This document shows, piece by piece, positions 34,301 to 49,300 of a stretch of DNA of 64,000 nucleotides. The notes beneath the pieces are model-generated. The model made no database searches. It was given only the letters and a program-made list of their open reading frames with translations, and was not told where the DNA came from. The DNA is taken from the NCBI RefSeq assembly GCF_001194135.2, contig NC_068987.1, positions 95,807,615-95,871,614 of the forward strand, given 5' to 3'. The position numbers and the translations under genes are program-made. The stretch comes from Octopus bimaculoides. Taxonomy: Eukaryota. Position 1 is the first letter of the stretch; the number at the start of each line of letters is the position of its first letter.

Positions 34301-37300
34301 TATGCTTAAGTGATTATTTTTGATATATCTAGATTAATCCCTTTGTGTTTGTTCAAAGGAAGGTGTGCTTATTTTATGTCTTTCCTGTTAAGCTTGGCCA
34401 TTCATTCATTTCTGCTTAAGCACCAGTCATGAAATGTTTACTGTCTTGTATGGAAATGTTTGTACCTGTTGAAGCTGTTTCCTGTCGGTTAGGTTTCAGT
34501 AACCAGAAAAAGAACAAAATGCCAAATCTGTCCTGGATAGATGGATACAAGAGGAACGGTCCTTGTCTGTGATTCTAATGATGACTGATAGGATGAATTC
34601 TAAGGATGTCATGACAGAGGTTTGGGGTTTGACCATTAGGAAAGAAAAAGAAAACCTTCTCTTTGAAGGGCAAGCTGAAATCTGCAAATTAAGATTTTAT
34701 TGGTTTTGCTGAGTGGTTTGGAACAAATGTCTTGGTTGCAGGCCTAATACAGTGTTGTGAAGTTTTATTTACGGTTCTGCTGCAGTATTTTGTATTCATC
34801 CTTAGTTTTCAGTTTTGGTTGTTATGTATTCGTTTCTCCGAGTATCCAGCTGAGGTGATGGCTTGTGTTGGCCGGTCACATGTCTGATGGTTACTGTGGA
34901 TGAGGAAATATCTCGCAGAGATGGGAACAGACCAGGACACTGCTCAGCGGTTTGCCTGGGACAACCTGAGCAAGTACTGACTAATGAGATACAGTGTTAC
35001 CAGAAGAACAATTGTTATCTTAGTCTTTCACAGGCTTGGCTCTTTGGTAAGAAGCTTGCTTCTGGGTAGACTTGGTAGACGGAAACTGAAAGAAGCCTGT
35101 CGTATATATATATATATATATATATATATATATGCCCCTGGACTGGCTCTTGTACGGGTGGCACATAAAAGACACCATTTCGAGCGTGGCCGTTTTCGTG
35201 CGGGTGACACGTAAAAGCACCCACTACACTCTCTGAGTGGTTGGCGTTAGGAAGGGCATCCAGCTGTAGAAACTCTGCCAAATTAGNNNNNNNNNNCCTG
35301 GACTGGCTCTTGTACGGGTGGCACATAAAAGACACCATTTCGAGCGTGGCCGTTTTCGTGCGGGTGACACGTAAAAGCACCCACTACACTCTCTGAGTGG
35401 TTGGCGTTAGGAAGGGCATCCAGCTGTAGAAACTCTGCCAAATTAGATTGGAGTCTGGTGTAGCCATCCGGTTGCACCAGTCCTCAGTCAAATCGTCCAA
35501 CCCATGCTAGCATGGAAAGCAGACGTTAAACGATGATGATGATGATGATGATGATCTCTGTCTCCACAGTTTGTTCAGTACATTATTGACTGAGAGGTCA
35601 TTGCCTCTCTCATTAATCTTAATCCTGGGATAATAAATGCTGTCAGGACATAACACACCTTATTTACTGATGTGTTCATTATTCATATTATTCTTATTAT
35701 TGAGAATAATATCAAAGGTGGTGGGCTGGCAGATAAATATCGAGGAGGATAAAATGTTTTTGCAGAACCATAAGTTTACTAATCTATTACAATAAATAAT
35801 ATTCTAATTGCTTTATACTGACCAATCTCATGTAGTAAGCTACAAAATTCTTACATTCTCGCAGATTTCCTGTAAATCAGACCACCTCTTGGTCCCAGCT
35901 GACAAAATGGAAAAGGCATTGCTTCAGAGAGTGGTGAGGGAGTGGAACAGTCACTCTGACCTGTGGGGCCCGCACTTGCGGAAAGCCATCTGATATCATT
36001 TAGCAGGGATATGGTCCGGGTGGGGGGTGCCAGAGGTCTCCACTGCCATAGGCTTGGTCGTAGACCTGTCTGAGACCAAATGATACTGACGAAAGTATAT
36101 CATGAAATGGCAGCTTATTCTGTTCTGTAGTGCCAATGCTGAATTGGACAAAAGATCATTAACTGCTAGCAGGTAAGAGATGGTATTGCTTCCTGTGCGT
36201 GCTTTATCCTTTAGTGAATTGTACTAATGATTCTGTCAGTCTGGATGGAGTGTAATCTATTGACAATGGGAATGTTTGGTTCTGTGATGTTTAGCAATCC
36301 AAACTACAAAAGTTTTTATGCAAAACAGTATTATTAATACTTGCTAAAAGATTGTGAAGAAATAATTACTTTCATTTTAAGAAAGCAGAATGTGCTGTTA
36401 TAAAGAAATTCAGTTCATAACGACGTGGTTTAAGATTCATTCTTGCTGTGGATGCTTTAGGCTGATGTTATTTACTGTTGCCGTGAGTGAAATTTGTTAG
36501 ACTGGAACTTTAAGGAACCCACCGTGTGTGTGTGTGTGTGTGAGAGAGAGGTACAGCTGTGAGGTTAGGGTGTTCACTTCAGGACCTAGTAGCTAAGGTC
36601 CGGTGTTGCTGTTGATGCTGTCAGCTGCTATCTTTTACTATAACACTTCATTGACCAATATCTTGTGAGTGAAGTTGCACCAGCCTCTCCATACATGTTA
36701 CTTCACATGTTCTTAAAGTCGCAAAGCCAACAAATGACCTATTGGAAAGGGAAATGACAGCAATGTCCACTGTCTGCAACTAAGTGAATTTTTGGAGAAG
36801 CACAAGTCTAAACATACACACATGCAATAGGCTTTTTTCCAGTTTTGTTTTACCAAATCCATTCACAAGGCTTTGCTCAGCCTGTGACTATAGCAGAAGA
36901 CCTTGCCCTAAGTACCACATTGTGGGATTGAACAGAGAACCATCTTGTTGCCTTATACACATACACAATTTTTCTTACCTATTTGAACTTAATCCTTTTT
37001 CTCATTTACCCACATCATTTACTGCACTTATTTAGAGAAATAAATTTATTTTCATAGGCTTTATTTTTAGATCTGTTTTCATCATCTCATCTGTTTTTTT
37101 TTTGGGGGGGGGGTTGTATTAATTTTCCTGAAAACCATATTTCTCTGAGGATATAATCGTTGGTTTTTGACTGAGAAAAAGAAATTTTTTTTTTACCAGA
37201 TATTTAAAAAAACATTTTTACTCTATTGTGTATTTTATAATTCAATGCTTGCTGATTGAAAAAAAAAAATCAATTTTTTACCTTGCTGTTGTACAACTAT

Positions 37301-46300: not shown

Positions 46301-49300
46301 TTAGATTGTTCATCATCACATTTGACTATATAATTCTTAATCTCCTATAGATGTCTCAATTAGTGCAATGTTCTACAAAAGTCAATTTCACTGGGAAACT
46401 TTGAACTCTAGATTCTAAACTCAACTCCCCAGGGCTTCTGGTCCCATATGTTGTTTCAAATTACTTTATCACCAGTCTATTATCTATCCATATTCTTTGA
46501 TTAGTAATCTATACACTTTTTATTGCAGGTACTGTTCTGATATGAGAAATAATATACTCAAAAAATATACAATTTTTTTTTTATTTGGTTGTAAATGAAT
46601 ACTTGTAATTTTTTTGTTTGTAATTTGTTTCTTTTTTATCCAAAGTGAAGCATTAAGTACAGTGAATTCCAACTATATTATTTCTAGATTTTGTTACACT
46701 GGTTGCATGGAATCTCCCCACCCTTCTAACCCTTTGTACTGAAGTTTTCTTTCTTTTCTTTTTTTTTTCTTTTCTTTTTTTGGTTATAAACTAGTGTCTG
46801 GGTTGTTATGATTGAGATAAGAATTTAGCTTGAATAAGTTCGTTAGCTGTATATTGGTGGTAGTTGAATGTGCTGCAGCCAACCTGGAAAGGAAGAGTTG
46901 TAAAGCTCAGGTGGGGTGGTAACATTTACATGAGAAGCAGGAATCTAGACATGAGAAACACTTAAACTGTTATTCTTTGAGTGCTGTTTAGCTTCATGTC
47001 CATTCTGATTAAATAGATCTGTAATGAAAGGTATTCTAGTTGTGACCATTCTACCTAGGAGTACATTATCTTCTGTGTCCTTTTATTTTTCTAAGACAGC
47101 GAAGTGTGATTTAAGGGAAGTTTGGCTGCTATATCTAAGCAGCCAAGCAAAGATAAATGCTTTTTCATTGGTTTGTTGTTGGCTGGTGTAAACCGGCAAA
47201 TCATATTGAATCCTCTAACGAACAAAACTTTGCCTTTGCAACTATCTATATTCTGCCTAAGCAAAAGACCATAGTATTGGAACCAATTTTCCACCAGTAC
47301 ATTCACTAGTATGATACTGATTTTAAAATAATTGCTTTTGAATTAATTCATCAGTTGAGAAAAGCATGAACATCACACATTCTTTTCTTTTTCCCTAAGC
47401 AATATGCTTATGTTAGAAATCGTTATTAGTTATACCCTAAGACACTGAGTATTATTTCTTTGGCTTATTCCAAACTTATACATCAATAGAGGCAGTTTGT
47501 CACATACTCAAAAAAAAAAAACAAAAAAAAAAACAGCCTTTCTCTCCAAATGCTGATGTGTGCAATCATCATGCTGATATTCAGTAAGGTTGTCTGTAAT
47601 TATAATGTTTAATTAAAACAGATATCAAAACATTTACTCCTGCCATCTAATCAAGTTTATAGGTAACTGAACAGGGAAGTACTTTTCAAAGATGTTTATA
47701 ACCAAAGAAATATTTTTCACCCCCAATTGTAGAATATTTTATTGAGACTATTTAGAAGCTCTCCATTTTGACTAAAACTAATTTCTGCTATGATCCCTGC
47801 AGCCAGTGTAAAATATAGTATTTCTGTCGTTAGCTGGTGGTTGTGACCACCTTTATGACATCCATGGATTTAGGTTTTGCTTTGCCATTTACTTGATATG
47901 CTTGTATGCCCATGTTTGTCTAGGGATCAGTCATACAGTCGTGCGTCCTCACTGTGCTACGGCGCTCCTCCTACTGCGTCACACGTCTCCTCCGCACACT
48001 ATCTACCACCAGATACTTCTGCTACACACCAATCATAGTCAGCCGCATGATCTGCGTCTTCGATCTGGCATTCCGTTGTCTCCAAACAGTACAACTCCAT
48101 TCCTGGACGACCTACTGCGTCTCACTTTCCACCGAGTTACAAACTCAGTGTTGCTGAGTGACTGACCCCTGCTCTCTGCGGAGACTACCAAAGACACCAA
48201 ATGCTACAGTTGTCAGTCGTCTGTATATGTTATCCTAGACCAATTGTAACGGCTCTCCGAAGACTAGACTCCACATCTACATCTGACCAATCCAATTCTA
48301 CATCTGTCACCAGTTTACTACTACTACCACTACTACTACTACAACAACCGTACTCATTAACCTAGACCAATTCTTTCGAACCAGCCCTCGATTGAGGAGT
48401 CCGAAGGCCATCAACCCTAGCCCTCTCCTCTCATACCAACATGTGTAGGTGCAACACATGGCACCTTTTACGTGATATTATTCGACTGACCAATGGTCAA
48501 TCCCTGACCACGCAATATAACCTCTCCTGCTGGTTTCATTTTCACAAAAGTCACGTCACCTAGTATTGGGACTATGTACTAGGCTAGTTGCTTGTCCTCG
48601 TAAGTAACGTTCATTTTGGCCCTGTTCCTCAGCACACCGCAGCCAGCATAGAACTATGTGACAATAGTTTTTTTCCTCTTTTTTTTTTATTTTTTTTTTT
48701 TTTACATATATATTCTTTTACTTTGCTATATGCTAAACTGTTTGCCTAACTTTCTTCCCTGCAAGCAACTTAATACTTAAACCATATTCTTCAAACTGCT
48801 CTATTCACTACTGTGTATTTTCAGTGTTTACTCTCGGTTCCAAAGTGTTTCCTGTGTTTAGTTTTCAATTAATTGCACCTTTTTACCAGTTTTGTTTGTG
48901 TTTAACTTGTGTGCAACTCCTAGTGTCAGCTCCTTGTCTTCCTTTGATAGAAATTAAAACTAAGCTAATGACCCTTGATTGCTAAACTGTTGCATTTTCT
49001 TTTAGTCTACTATTGTGTTTTGTATGTTAGGTAAGTGACTAATGCAAAGACAAAGTAAAAACTATCATAGCTAGGTTGGTGTGTCTGGGCACCTGTGATA
49101 ATTCTAGCATGCATCATATTTAATGTAAATTACTTTGGATGCAGCCAGCTTTGACATACTTTGTACCAAATGCAAGTTTAGAAAGGAAAGATTGAACAAA
49201 CTGCTGGATATTCCAGATTTTTGCTCAAAAACAAAATTGACTACTGCCTTGATCAGTTACAGCCATATTACATTGTTGTTATATAAATTTGGTTTTGTAT

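Follow-up and report, generated by a model that had tools for sequence, protein, structure and literature searches.

The long third intron of an octopus gene for an SRSF3/7-family SR protein very probably carries a genuine poison cassette exon, here termed P3, at the junction between the RRM-coding and the RS-coding parts of the gene. Poison exons through which a gene limits its own expression are characteristic of SR splicing factors; the recorded cases come largely from vertebrates, flies, worms and plants. The window analyzed here is a stretch of 64,000 nucleotides from Octopus bimaculoides (contig NC_068987.1, positions 95,807,615 to 95,871,614), and all features described below lie on its + strand. 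A previous sequence-only reading of this DNA had proposed that three intronic blocks, P1, P2 and P3, are poison exons which together exert a graded feedback. This triple arrangement found no support in our analysis, as P1 and P2 are splice-site matches only, the motif richness of P2 stemming from a microsatellite and P1 being free of WCWWC motifs. We consider it likely that intron 3 carries one genuine poison cassette exon, P3, and that P1 and P2 are chance pseudo-exons. The gene probably has an ordinary single self-limiting switch as in vertebrate SRSF3 and SRSF7, because among the three candidates conservation together with intact splice sites was found for P3 only.

The Host Gene Encodes an SR Protein of the SRSF3/7 Family

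The coding part of exon 1 (4250..4395), which starts with an ATG at 4250, supplies the first half of the RRM. Its end is in phase 2 (GCCAG/gtaaga, the slash marking the exon border), and in the alignment with a non-cephalopod lophotrochozoan orthologue (L001) it showed 75% identity. Exon 2 (38932..39009) contributes the RNP1 part of the RRM (...DLDGR), and exon 3 (41434..41547) encodes the end of the RRM and the linker and again ends in phase 2 (CGTCG/gtatgt). The RS domain starts in exon 4 (60936..60992), whose junction and phase are identical to those in L001, and continues in exon 5 (61282..61329) and exon 6 (62211..62660), the latter being RS-rich before it passes into a lineage-specific tail. 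A search for relatives of the exon 6 region gave none, and the gene probably extends past the end of the window. Intron 1 has a length of 34.5 kb, and intron 3, which houses P3, is also long.

The best PDB matches of the RRM were 2HVZ (SRSF7, E = 1e-24), 2I2Y and 2I38 (SRSF3, E ~ 1e-22) and 9ASQ (SRSF3). The protein thus has a single N-terminal RRM that is nearest to those of SRSF3 and SRSF7, and exons 4–6 encode a C-terminal arginine/serine-rich domain, as is characteristic of these two proteins. A CCHC zinc knuckle, which within this pair is a trait of SRSF7 only, is absent: Pfam reported RRM_1 alone and the linker contains no CCHC pattern. Because of this absence, the architecture is of the SRSF3 rather than the SRSF7 type. 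Taken together, the host gene is an SRSF3/7-family gene without zinc knuckle that falls in a lophotrochozoan branch of the family and has a long lineage-specific C-terminus. The gene type and the reading frame on which the sequence-only reading was built were confirmed.

Splice Borders and Premature Stops Do Not Discriminate Between the Candidates

P1 (35865..36172, 308 nt) has a GC/G-rich core at 35860-36070, and its first in-frame stop is a TGA at 35935-35937. In P2 (37871..38031, 161 nt) the first in-frame stop is a TAA at 38010-38012. P3 (47924..48599) is a non-coding candidate exon of 676 nt (3n+1) with stops in all three frames; the first one in frame after the exon 3 junction is a TAG at 48036..48038, corresponding to codon 39 of the insert. 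All three blocks are indeed bordered by AG...GT and introduce an in-frame stop, and their assignment to the RRM-coding part (P1, P2) or to the interval between the RRM and RS parts (P3) agrees with the exon model.

The splice sites were scored with a simple consensus PWM made for this analysis. Acceptor and donor scores were 8.2 and 11.2 for P1, 8.3 and 11.7 for P2, and 7.3 and 6.6 for P3, compared to 3.4-13.1 for the acceptors of exons 2-6 and 6.1-12.6 for the donors of the six exons. The P3 donor has a weak exonic side (CTC/GTAAGT). In the introns, 44-284 pairs of sites with comparable scores delimit pseudo-exons of 50-700 nt. All decoy pairs tested would bring in a premature stop, namely 54/54 pairs of intron 1 and 62/62 of intron 3 (116/116 together). 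Since comparable decoy pairs all give stops too, borders and a premature stop alone do not discriminate. The three best-paired donors of intron 1 are those of P1 and P2 and one at 12161, which adjoins a SINE copy.

P3 Is a Compositional Outlier

P3 is C-rich and G-poor. Its C content (0.317) and its density of CNYC motifs (5.8 per 100 nt) were not reached by any other 676-nt window, and the C content jumps from 0.17 to 0.45 precisely at the acceptor. The CpG o/e of P3 is 0.75, close to that of the exons (0.79) and far above that of the whole window (0.34). Apart from the exons, the promoter-proximal region, SINE copies and a segment at 13.4-16.1 kb, P3 alone is CpG-rich. WCWWC motifs occur 20 times in P3 compared to 13.9±3.5 in dinucleotide shuffles, and CNYC motifs 39 times compared to 35.5±4.3, so that base composition largely accounts for the motif excess. 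Nine of the 20 WCWWC motifs derive from a lineage-specific (TAC)9 microsatellite at 48316..48342. The 5′ end of P3 harbours a cluster of CNYC-type motifs (47944..48061) that is conserved (see below) and represents a candidate binding platform for an SRSF3-type RRM, i.e., an exonic enhancer. No paralogous copy of P3 was found within the window.

Of the three blocks described as compositionally distinct in the sequence-only reading, P3 is a true outlier; P2 is built on a microsatellite, and P1 is GC-rich but CpG-depleted and contains no WCWWC motif. The richness of P2 and P3 in ACTAC-type pentamers, also put forward in that reading, is present and originates from the microsatellite in P2 and for 9 of 20 motifs from (TAC)9 in P3.

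P3 and Its Splice Sites Are Conserved in Two Relatives

An exhaustive HMMER search over 1.84 billion cluster representatives, with the ORF spanning the P3 acceptor as query, revealed just two relatives, a close one (L012) and a more distant one represented by three independent runs (L009-L011). From this small number we conclude that P3 is a single-copy sequence and not a member of a transposon family. The contigs are short and comprise P3 plus intron flanks, i.e., unspliced or genomic sequence, and they presumably belong to the orthologous gene.

In L012, P3 is 98.5% identical compared to 83% for the adjacent intron (Fisher p = 5e-24). Identity amounts to 100% over the 56 nt that precede the AG, to 98.3-98.8% over the first 417 nt of P3 and to 72-92% over the 1.6 kb of upstream intron; the P3 acceptor is conserved. 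In L009-L011, the alignable part is confined to positions 47868-48654 of the window, and the alignment is lost past 48654. It includes a 5′ intron flank (47868..47923, 94.6% identity in L009), in which the polypyrimidine/branch region and, at 47922-47923, the acceptor AG are located and from which weaker similarity extends to ~47798 (TGCAGCCAGTGT), and a 3′ flank (48600..48654, 92.7%) that begins with the donor GTAAGT (48600-48605) and ends in CAGCCAGCATAGAAC. The acceptor TTTGTYTAG/GGATCAG and the donor TC/GTAAGTAA are both retained in L009. Identity to L009 peaks at the exon ends and the ~55-nt flanks (89-95%; 88.7% for nt 1-150 of P3) and is lowest in the middle of the exon (53-74%). The conservation above the neighbouring intron that had been named as a check on the poison-exon proposal was thus obtained for P3 in both relatives.

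The putative orthologue of P3 in L009 has a length of 628 nt, which is also 3n+1, and contains 6-9 stops per frame. The two sequences differ by indels of 3, 5, 5, 10, 25, 3, and 7 nt within P3, the 25-nt gap covering (TAC)9, and of 2 nt in the downstream flank. The C-rich, G-poor makeup is kept in L009 (C 0.275, G 0.161), as is a high CNYC density (4.1 per 100 nt versus 1.1-1.2 in the L009 flanks). Conserved in L009 are 18 of 38 CNYC motifs of P3, 13 of them in the 5′ cluster, but only 2 of 20 WCWWC motifs. The conserved motif cluster is therefore of the CNYC type, and the pentamers emphasized by the sequence-only reading are mostly lineage-specific.

In summary, P3 is located in an SR-gene intron, has splice sites conserved on the strand of the gene and stands out from the flanking intron by much higher conservation, with no sign of protein coding. 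Its inclusion would introduce a premature stop and a frameshift, also in L009, a property that is not discriminating alone. Since P3 is a compositional outlier, is conserved together with its splice sites, has a length of 3n+1 with stops in every frame and shows, relative to L009, indels not divisible by three, it very probably represents a genuine poison cassette exon.

Alternative Explanations

The conservation of P3 might reflect another role, namely that of an exon of an overlapping + strand transcript, non-coding or other, or of a regulatory element within the intron at the RNA or DNA level, for instance a decoy exon for intron detention or an enhancer. That the related contigs hold P3 in unspliced or genomic form and that a CAGCCAG element is common to both conserved flanks would be compatible with such a role, which we nevertheless regard as unlikely. 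The block is bordered precisely, and on the strand of the gene, by a conserved AG with polypyrimidine tract and a conserved GTAAGT, its strand-asymmetric composition points to a feature at the RNA level, its position is that of the known SRSF3/7 poison cassettes and of the insert in L001 described below, and a scan of the window with Rfam gave no RNA family. Clearly less probable still is a function of P3 mainly in the formation of a stable and functional RRM-only protein of 150 aa instead of decay. Of the 38 residues of the tail past exon 3, 33 are identical in L009, and the exon-4-containing SRSF3 mRNA of mammals was reported to give a truncated protein (PMC10321290). However, the same level of nucleotide conservation extends across 56 nt of the intron upstream of P3, which argues that the constraint is not on the coding frame. 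Moreover, the position of the stop is not conserved, as the TAG of P3 reads TGG in L009, where the stop shifts to codon 43, and the conserved block lies mostly 3′ of the stop.

We consider it highly improbable that all three blocks function as regulated poison exons, with P1 and P2 abolishing RNA binding and P3 removing the RS domain in a graded manner. Such a model could draw on the P3 component, which is itself supported, on the strong splice-site matches of P1 and P2 with their top-ranking donors, and on mammalian SRSF4, the nearest precedent, where several coordinated unproductive cassettes are located in a long first intron (PMC4379411). The SRSF4 cassettes have EST support and are conserved among mammals at the level of coding exons, whereas P1 and P2 rest on sequence features. 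Strong matches are unremarkable because they are expected in an intron of 34.5 kb, and chance readily yields such sites with a stop, as seen with the decoy pairs. P1 is GC/G-rich across ~200 nt, yet it has a background CpG o/e (0.28, compared to 0.34 in the window), zero WCWWC motifs and a CNYC count equal to or below the shuffle expectation. The C/A richness and the ACTAC-type pentamers of P2 derive from its core, a fast-evolving (ACT/ACC)n microsatellite at 37879-37946. Neither block is among the CpG-retaining segments that mark the exons and P3. In these respects P1 and P2 resemble unused intronic pseudo-exons, which have good AG/GT borders, a plausible size and dozens of comparable pairs alongside, and, as with these, no further feature points to constraint; unlike typical pseudo-exons, their donors rank among the strongest of intron 1. 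We give just as little credence to the variant in which P1 and/or P2 are lineage-specific poison exons within the RRM-coding part that provide stepwise feedback together with the conserved P3. Judged by this intrinsic evidence, both blocks most likely arose as pseudo-exons by chance in the 34.5-kb intron and may occasionally be used as cryptic exons.

Comparison With Known Poison Cassettes

Unproductive splicing is used consistently across SR genes (PMC4379411). In vertebrate SRSF3 (SRp20), exon 4 has a length of 456 nt, is located between the RRM and RS exons, and its inclusion is promoted by SRSF3 itself (PMC10321290). The octopus gene shares with SRSF3 a protein with one RRM, no zinc knuckle and an RS tail, and a long cassette (456 nt versus 676 nt for P3) with an early stop that follows the last RRM/linker exon, precedes the first RS exon and is conserved far above the surrounding intron. 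The likeness is one of position and architecture, not of compared exon sequences. Unlike SRSF3 exon 4, P3 is not ultraconserved throughout but shows a mosaic conservation in two relatives, with the ends kept and indels in the middle, and its host gene belongs to a lophotrochozoan branch and has the long C-terminal extension. For P3, inclusion, NMD and autoregulation are inferred.

SRSF7 (9G8) controls itself by two modes, inclusion of a poison cassette and retention of the flanking introns (review PMC12179342). Common to the octopus gene and the intron 3 cassette of SRSF7 are the RRM, for which SRSF7 is the closest solved structure (2HVZ), the location of the cassette after the RRM-coding exons, and conserved intron flanks, which suggest regulated splicing. 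The octopus protein differs by the lack of the CCHC zinc knuckle. SRSF7 is also linked with Split-ORFs and intron-retaining architectural RNAs; in contrast, the window contains no Split-ORF, as the RS frame has no ATG downstream of the last P3 stop.

A spliced transcript of L001 carries a stop-containing insert of 419 nt exactly between the equivalents of exons 3 and 4, and a second called gene begins inside this insert and encodes the RS domain. No sequence similarity was found between P3 and the L001 insert.

Proposed Mechanism and Implications

Splicing of P3 between exons 3 and 4 would shift the reading frame, and translation would end 39 codons into the insert, 561 nt upstream of the next exon junction. 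Given this early stop, the mRNA is predicted either to undergo nonsense-mediated decay or to yield a protein of 150 aa with the RRM but without the RS domain. Inclusion of P3 would probably be promoted by SR proteins acting on its conserved CNYC-rich 5′ part, the most plausible one being the product of the gene itself. Such binding would establish a negative feedback on the protein level comparable to that exerted by exon 4 of SRSF3 and the poison cassette of SRSF7; the conserved CNYC cluster at 47944-48061 and the SRSF3/7-type RRM are indirect evidence for this presumed autoregulation through the gene's own protein. Exact look-ups of the predicted products of P1, P2 and P3 inclusion gave no match; since the control, a read-through product of exon 1 and intron 1, gave none either, this look-up is powerless.

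P3 does not, on the present evidence, reveal a new regulatory architecture but adds, in a cephalopod gene, to a known kind of poison cassette. It also lends itself readily to measurements of splicing-factor homeostasis in octopus tissues. Lareau and Brenner reportedly left unsettled whether poison cassettes of the SRSF3/7-type subfamily are ancient or originated repeatedly. Because the cassettes of vertebrate SRSF3 and SRSF7, P3 and the L001 insert occupy one and the same junction, a poison cassette at the RRM/RS junction may be positionally ancestral to bilaterian SRSF3/7-type genes, and P3 together with the L001 insert provides a concrete locus for asking whether this cassette is ancient or recurrent.

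Structure of the gene and position of the candidate blocks

The gene is spliced from the + strand and consists of exon 1 (coding part 4250-4395), exon 2 (38932-39009), exon 3 (41434-41547), exon 4 (60936-60992), exon 5 (61282-61329) and exon 6 (62211-62660). These borders were checked base by base, and AG...GT was present at every internal exon border. The product starts with an RRM, followed by an RS-rich tail. Among solved structures, the RRM matched SRSF7 best (2HVZ, E=1e-24) and then SRSF3 (2I38/2I2Y, about 1e-22), and Pfam returned only RRM_1 and no zinc knuckle. The closest database proteins were lophotrochozoan (Mactra antiquata, Mya arenaria, Capitella, Rotaria, bryozoans) with 55-74% identity. 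From the exon borders and these matches it follows that the sequence-only reading had assigned the gene correctly to the SRSF3/7 type and had correctly placed its three proposed poison exons relative to the protein domains, with P1 and P2 in intron 1 inside the RRM and P3 in intron 3 between the RRM and the RS domain.

The introns contain several other elements. A (CA)11(CT)50 dinucleotide tract at 41237-41359 ends about 75 nt 5' of the exon 3 acceptor, and a comparable (CT)n tract lies at 61553-61590 within the exon 5/exon 6 intron; being pyrimidine-rich and near acceptors, both could affect splicing. Just 3' of exon 1, a CpG-rich stretch at 4900-7700 (observed/expected about 1.0-1.3) lacks long ORFs and probably marks an unmethylated promoter-proximal zone. 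A near-perfect foldback at 7260-7454 is composed of two CpG-dense 86-nt arms, 98% complementary and 23 nt apart, with CCTCCTCTC on both sides, which looks like the target-site duplication made when a MITE-like element inserted recently into intron 1. Copies of one SINE-like repeat, which contains ...CGTTTAACGTCCGCTTTCCATGCTAGCATGGGTTGGAC..., are numerous, 66-99% alike and present in both orientations (508-710, 10362-10609, 12036-12155, 21836-22071, 32147-32343, 33341-33532, 35137-35555, 42697-42815, 63816-63982). The youngest copies keep CpG and are the source of most CpG-rich intronic spots. Several copies lie in the GC-richer 32-36 kb region of intron 1. This region also harbors a 138-aa ORF on the - strand (32958-33374), which we take by eye to resemble a Tc1/mariner-type transposase remnant.

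Splice signals and stops of P1, P2 and P3

All three blocks were found on the + strand with AG/GT borders and a stop in frame with the preceding exon, as had been described: P1 at 35865-36172 (308 nt, stop at 35935-35937), P2 at 37871-38031 (161 nt, stop at 38010-38012) and P3 at 47924-48599 (676 nt, stop at 48036-48038). With a simple consensus matrix, untrained and based on textbook metazoan frequencies, the acceptor/donor scores were 8.2/11.2 for P1, 8.3/11.7 for P2 and 7.3/6.6 for P3, and the real exons gave 3.4-13.1 for acceptors (exons 2-6) and 6.1-12.6 for donors. At comparable thresholds, the introns contained 44 to 284 AG...GT pairs of 50-700 nt, and every decoy pair tested also introduced a premature stop (54/54 in intron 1 and 62/62 in intron 3). 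AG/GT borders plus a stop are therefore nearly uninformative, and the original observation, accurate in coordinates, borders and stops, is confirmed in part.

Composition and binding motifs

P3 is a true compositional outlier. Its C content (0.317) and its CNYC density (5.8 per 100 nt) were unmatched by any other 676-nt window in the 64 kb. Its CpG observed/expected ratio was 0.75, compared to 0.34 for the window average and 0.79 for coding exons. C, about 0.17 before the P3 acceptor, reached 0.45 exactly there, with CpG rising from 0 to 5-7 per 60 nt, and the signal died away about 60 nt beyond the donor. A scan of the window for CpG-retaining segments returned exons 1, 3 and 6, the regions 4.9-7.7 kb and 13.4-16.1 kb, young SINE copies and P3; P1 and P2 were not among them.

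P2 and P3 had also been described as rich in ACTAC-type pentamers, a motif class bound by SRSF3-type RRMs. In P2, the pentamers and the overall composition stem from an (ACT/ACC)n microsatellite lying at 37879-37946. For P3, 20 WCWWC motifs were counted versus 13.9±3.5 in dinucleotide shuffles (at least 20 in 17 of 300), and 39 CNYC motifs versus 35.5±4.3. Since this excess is modest, the motif richness of P3 mostly reflects base composition.

Conservation of P3 in relatives

In an exhaustive HMMER search with a 90-aa ORF spanning the P3 acceptor, exactly two relatives were found among 1.84 billion cluster representatives, which argues against P3 being a repeat family; the clusters of P0121 and P0122 contained no additional members. 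A contig of a close relative (L012; 2092 nt, one run) covers 46231-48340. Its identity was 72-92% by segment over 1.6 kb of intron 5' of P3, 100% over the 56 nt before the acceptor and 98.3-98.8% over the first 417 nt of P3. When pooled, identity was 98.5% on the P3 side versus 83.3% in the upstream intron (Fisher p = 5e-24).

A more distant relative is represented by three near-identical contigs (L009, L010, L011; 1265-1266 nt, three runs), which align to 47868-48654 only, their outer 162 and 363 nt being unalignable. In L009, both the P3 acceptor context (tgcttgtatgcccatRtttgtYtag/GGATCAGTCA) and the donor (TGTCYTC/gtaagtaa) are kept. Identity was 94.6% in the 56-nt 5' flank, 88.7% in nt 1-150 of P3, 53-74% in its middle with gaps counted, 88.4% in its last 76 nt (80.3% with gaps counted) and 92.7% in the 55 nt 3' of P3. 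The orthologue comprises 628 nt (3n+1). Read in the exon 3 frame, it stops at codon 43, and each reading frame has 6-9 stops; it is still C-rich and G-poor with AT-rich flanks. The indels measure 3, 5, 5, 10, 25, 3 and 7 nt, plus 2 nt in the downstream flank. With ends, splice sites and near intron constrained, an interior that takes indels and no reading frame, P3 looks like a regulated non-coding alternative exon.

The motifs are unevenly conserved. Only 2 of the 20 WCWWC pentamers are kept in place in L009, and nine lie inside a (TAC)9 run (48316-48342) that falls in the 25-nt gap. By comparison, 18 of 38 CNYC motifs are kept, 13 of them at 47944-48058. This points to the CNYC-rich 5' end of P3 (47944-48061), rather than the ACTAC-type repeats, as the candidate platform for protein binding. 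A CAGCCAG direct repeat is present in both intron flanks of P3, at 47800-47813 (TGCAGCCAGTGT, upstream) and 48640-48653 (GCAGCCAGCATAGAAC, downstream). Both copies are kept in L009 and may form a paired intronic regulatory site.

Unproductive transcripts outside cephalopods

Word-indexed protein searches with the predicted P3-inclusion product, a lophotrochozoan truncated product (P0002) and the exon 6 peptide gave no cephalopod match. The first of these led to L001 (Logan SRR28036163), a 1120-nt assembled lophotrochozoan transcript with an RRM 74% identical to that of the octopus gene. In L001, exons 1-3 are spliced, and a 419-nt insert (320-738) lies precisely between exons 3 and 4; translation would stop in it after 30 codons. 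RS-coding exons lie downstream. The RS domain belongs to a second called gene (732-1118) that begins within the insert, a layout resembling the Split-ORFs described for SRSF7. The insert has an exon-like GC content of 0.437 and is C-biased. Its first two bases are GT and its last two AG, so that a retained short intron is an alternative to a cassette. It showed no similarity above shuffles to P3, nor any to the Mactra antiquata locus L004. L001 thus shows unproductive isoforms at the RRM/RS junction outside cephalopods, which does not imply homology of the elements.

Two transcripts of another orthologue (L002 and L003; Logan SRR13480653 and SRR8567600) have exons 1-2 joined and simply continue past the exon 2 donor (GGAAA/GTACGT) into a pyrimidine-rich intron 2, giving a 128-aa truncated RRM product. 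A P3-like island in L004 (Mactra antiquata CM103815.1), C-rich and CNYC-rich at 49100-51000+, was rejected as a tandem satellite or transposon and not an exon. The array (49100-52100, period about 170 nt) is flanked by (TCCG/TCTG)n runs and sits in the bivalve orthologue, in the intron that follows its first RS exon, where it mimics such an island.

Interpretation of the three blocks

Several other identities of P3 could be discarded. Stops in all frames rule out a coding exon, and neither the side nor the strand of the adjoining T-run fits the poly(A) tail of a retroposon. An alternative terminal exon is ruled out as the nearest poly(A) signal (ATTAAA at 48953) lies past the conserved block. 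The absence of a second copy in the window speaks against P1, P2 or P3 as repeats. The pairing of a hairpin at the P3 acceptor (47922-47938/48154-48170) is not kept in L009, and a strong acceptor at 48633 has lost its AG there. An Rfam scan of the whole window returned no RNA family. The P3 ORF and eight predicted isoform or intron-retention products had no record in exact look-ups, which are uninformative because the negative control was absent too. With splice sites, 3n+1 length and early stop kept in L009 and conservation above that of the intron, we consider it probable that P3 is a poison cassette.

We infer that P3 inclusion would cause a frameshift, with translation ending 561 nt before the next junction. 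Such mRNA would be directed to decay, either via the exon-junction rule or merely by the very long 3' UTR created; alternatively, a 150-aa RRM-only protein would result. The gene's own product might act on the CNYC cluster of P3 and thereby establish feedback. By analogy this is a natural hypothesis, because the SRSF3 protein promotes the inclusion of exon 4 (456 nt, stop-containing) in its own mRNA (PMC10321290) and SR genes make general use of unproductive splicing (PMC4379411).

The proposal that all three blocks are poison exons providing graded feedback is very improbable in our view. The splice scores of P1 and P2 are strong, and their donors are two of the three best-paired donors in intron 1, the third, at 12161, adjoining a SINE copy. 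However, splice-site strength is all that speaks for them: P2 owes its composition to a microsatellite, and in P1, where about 200 nt form a GC/G-rich core, the CpG observed/expected ratio is 0.28 and there are zero WCWWC motifs. The closest precedent is mammalian SRSF4, with three coordinated cassettes in its long first intron (PMC4379411), but those are backed by EST evidence and exon-level conservation, support that P1 and P2 do not have. P1 and P2 are thus probable decoys. Of the original interpretation, the gene assignment holds, the P3 cassette is well supported and the three-exon graded feedback is unsupported: the locus comprises one well-supported member of a known element class and two probable decoys. 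P3 adds cephalopod evidence on how old the poison cassette at the RRM/RS junction of SRSF3/7-type genes is.
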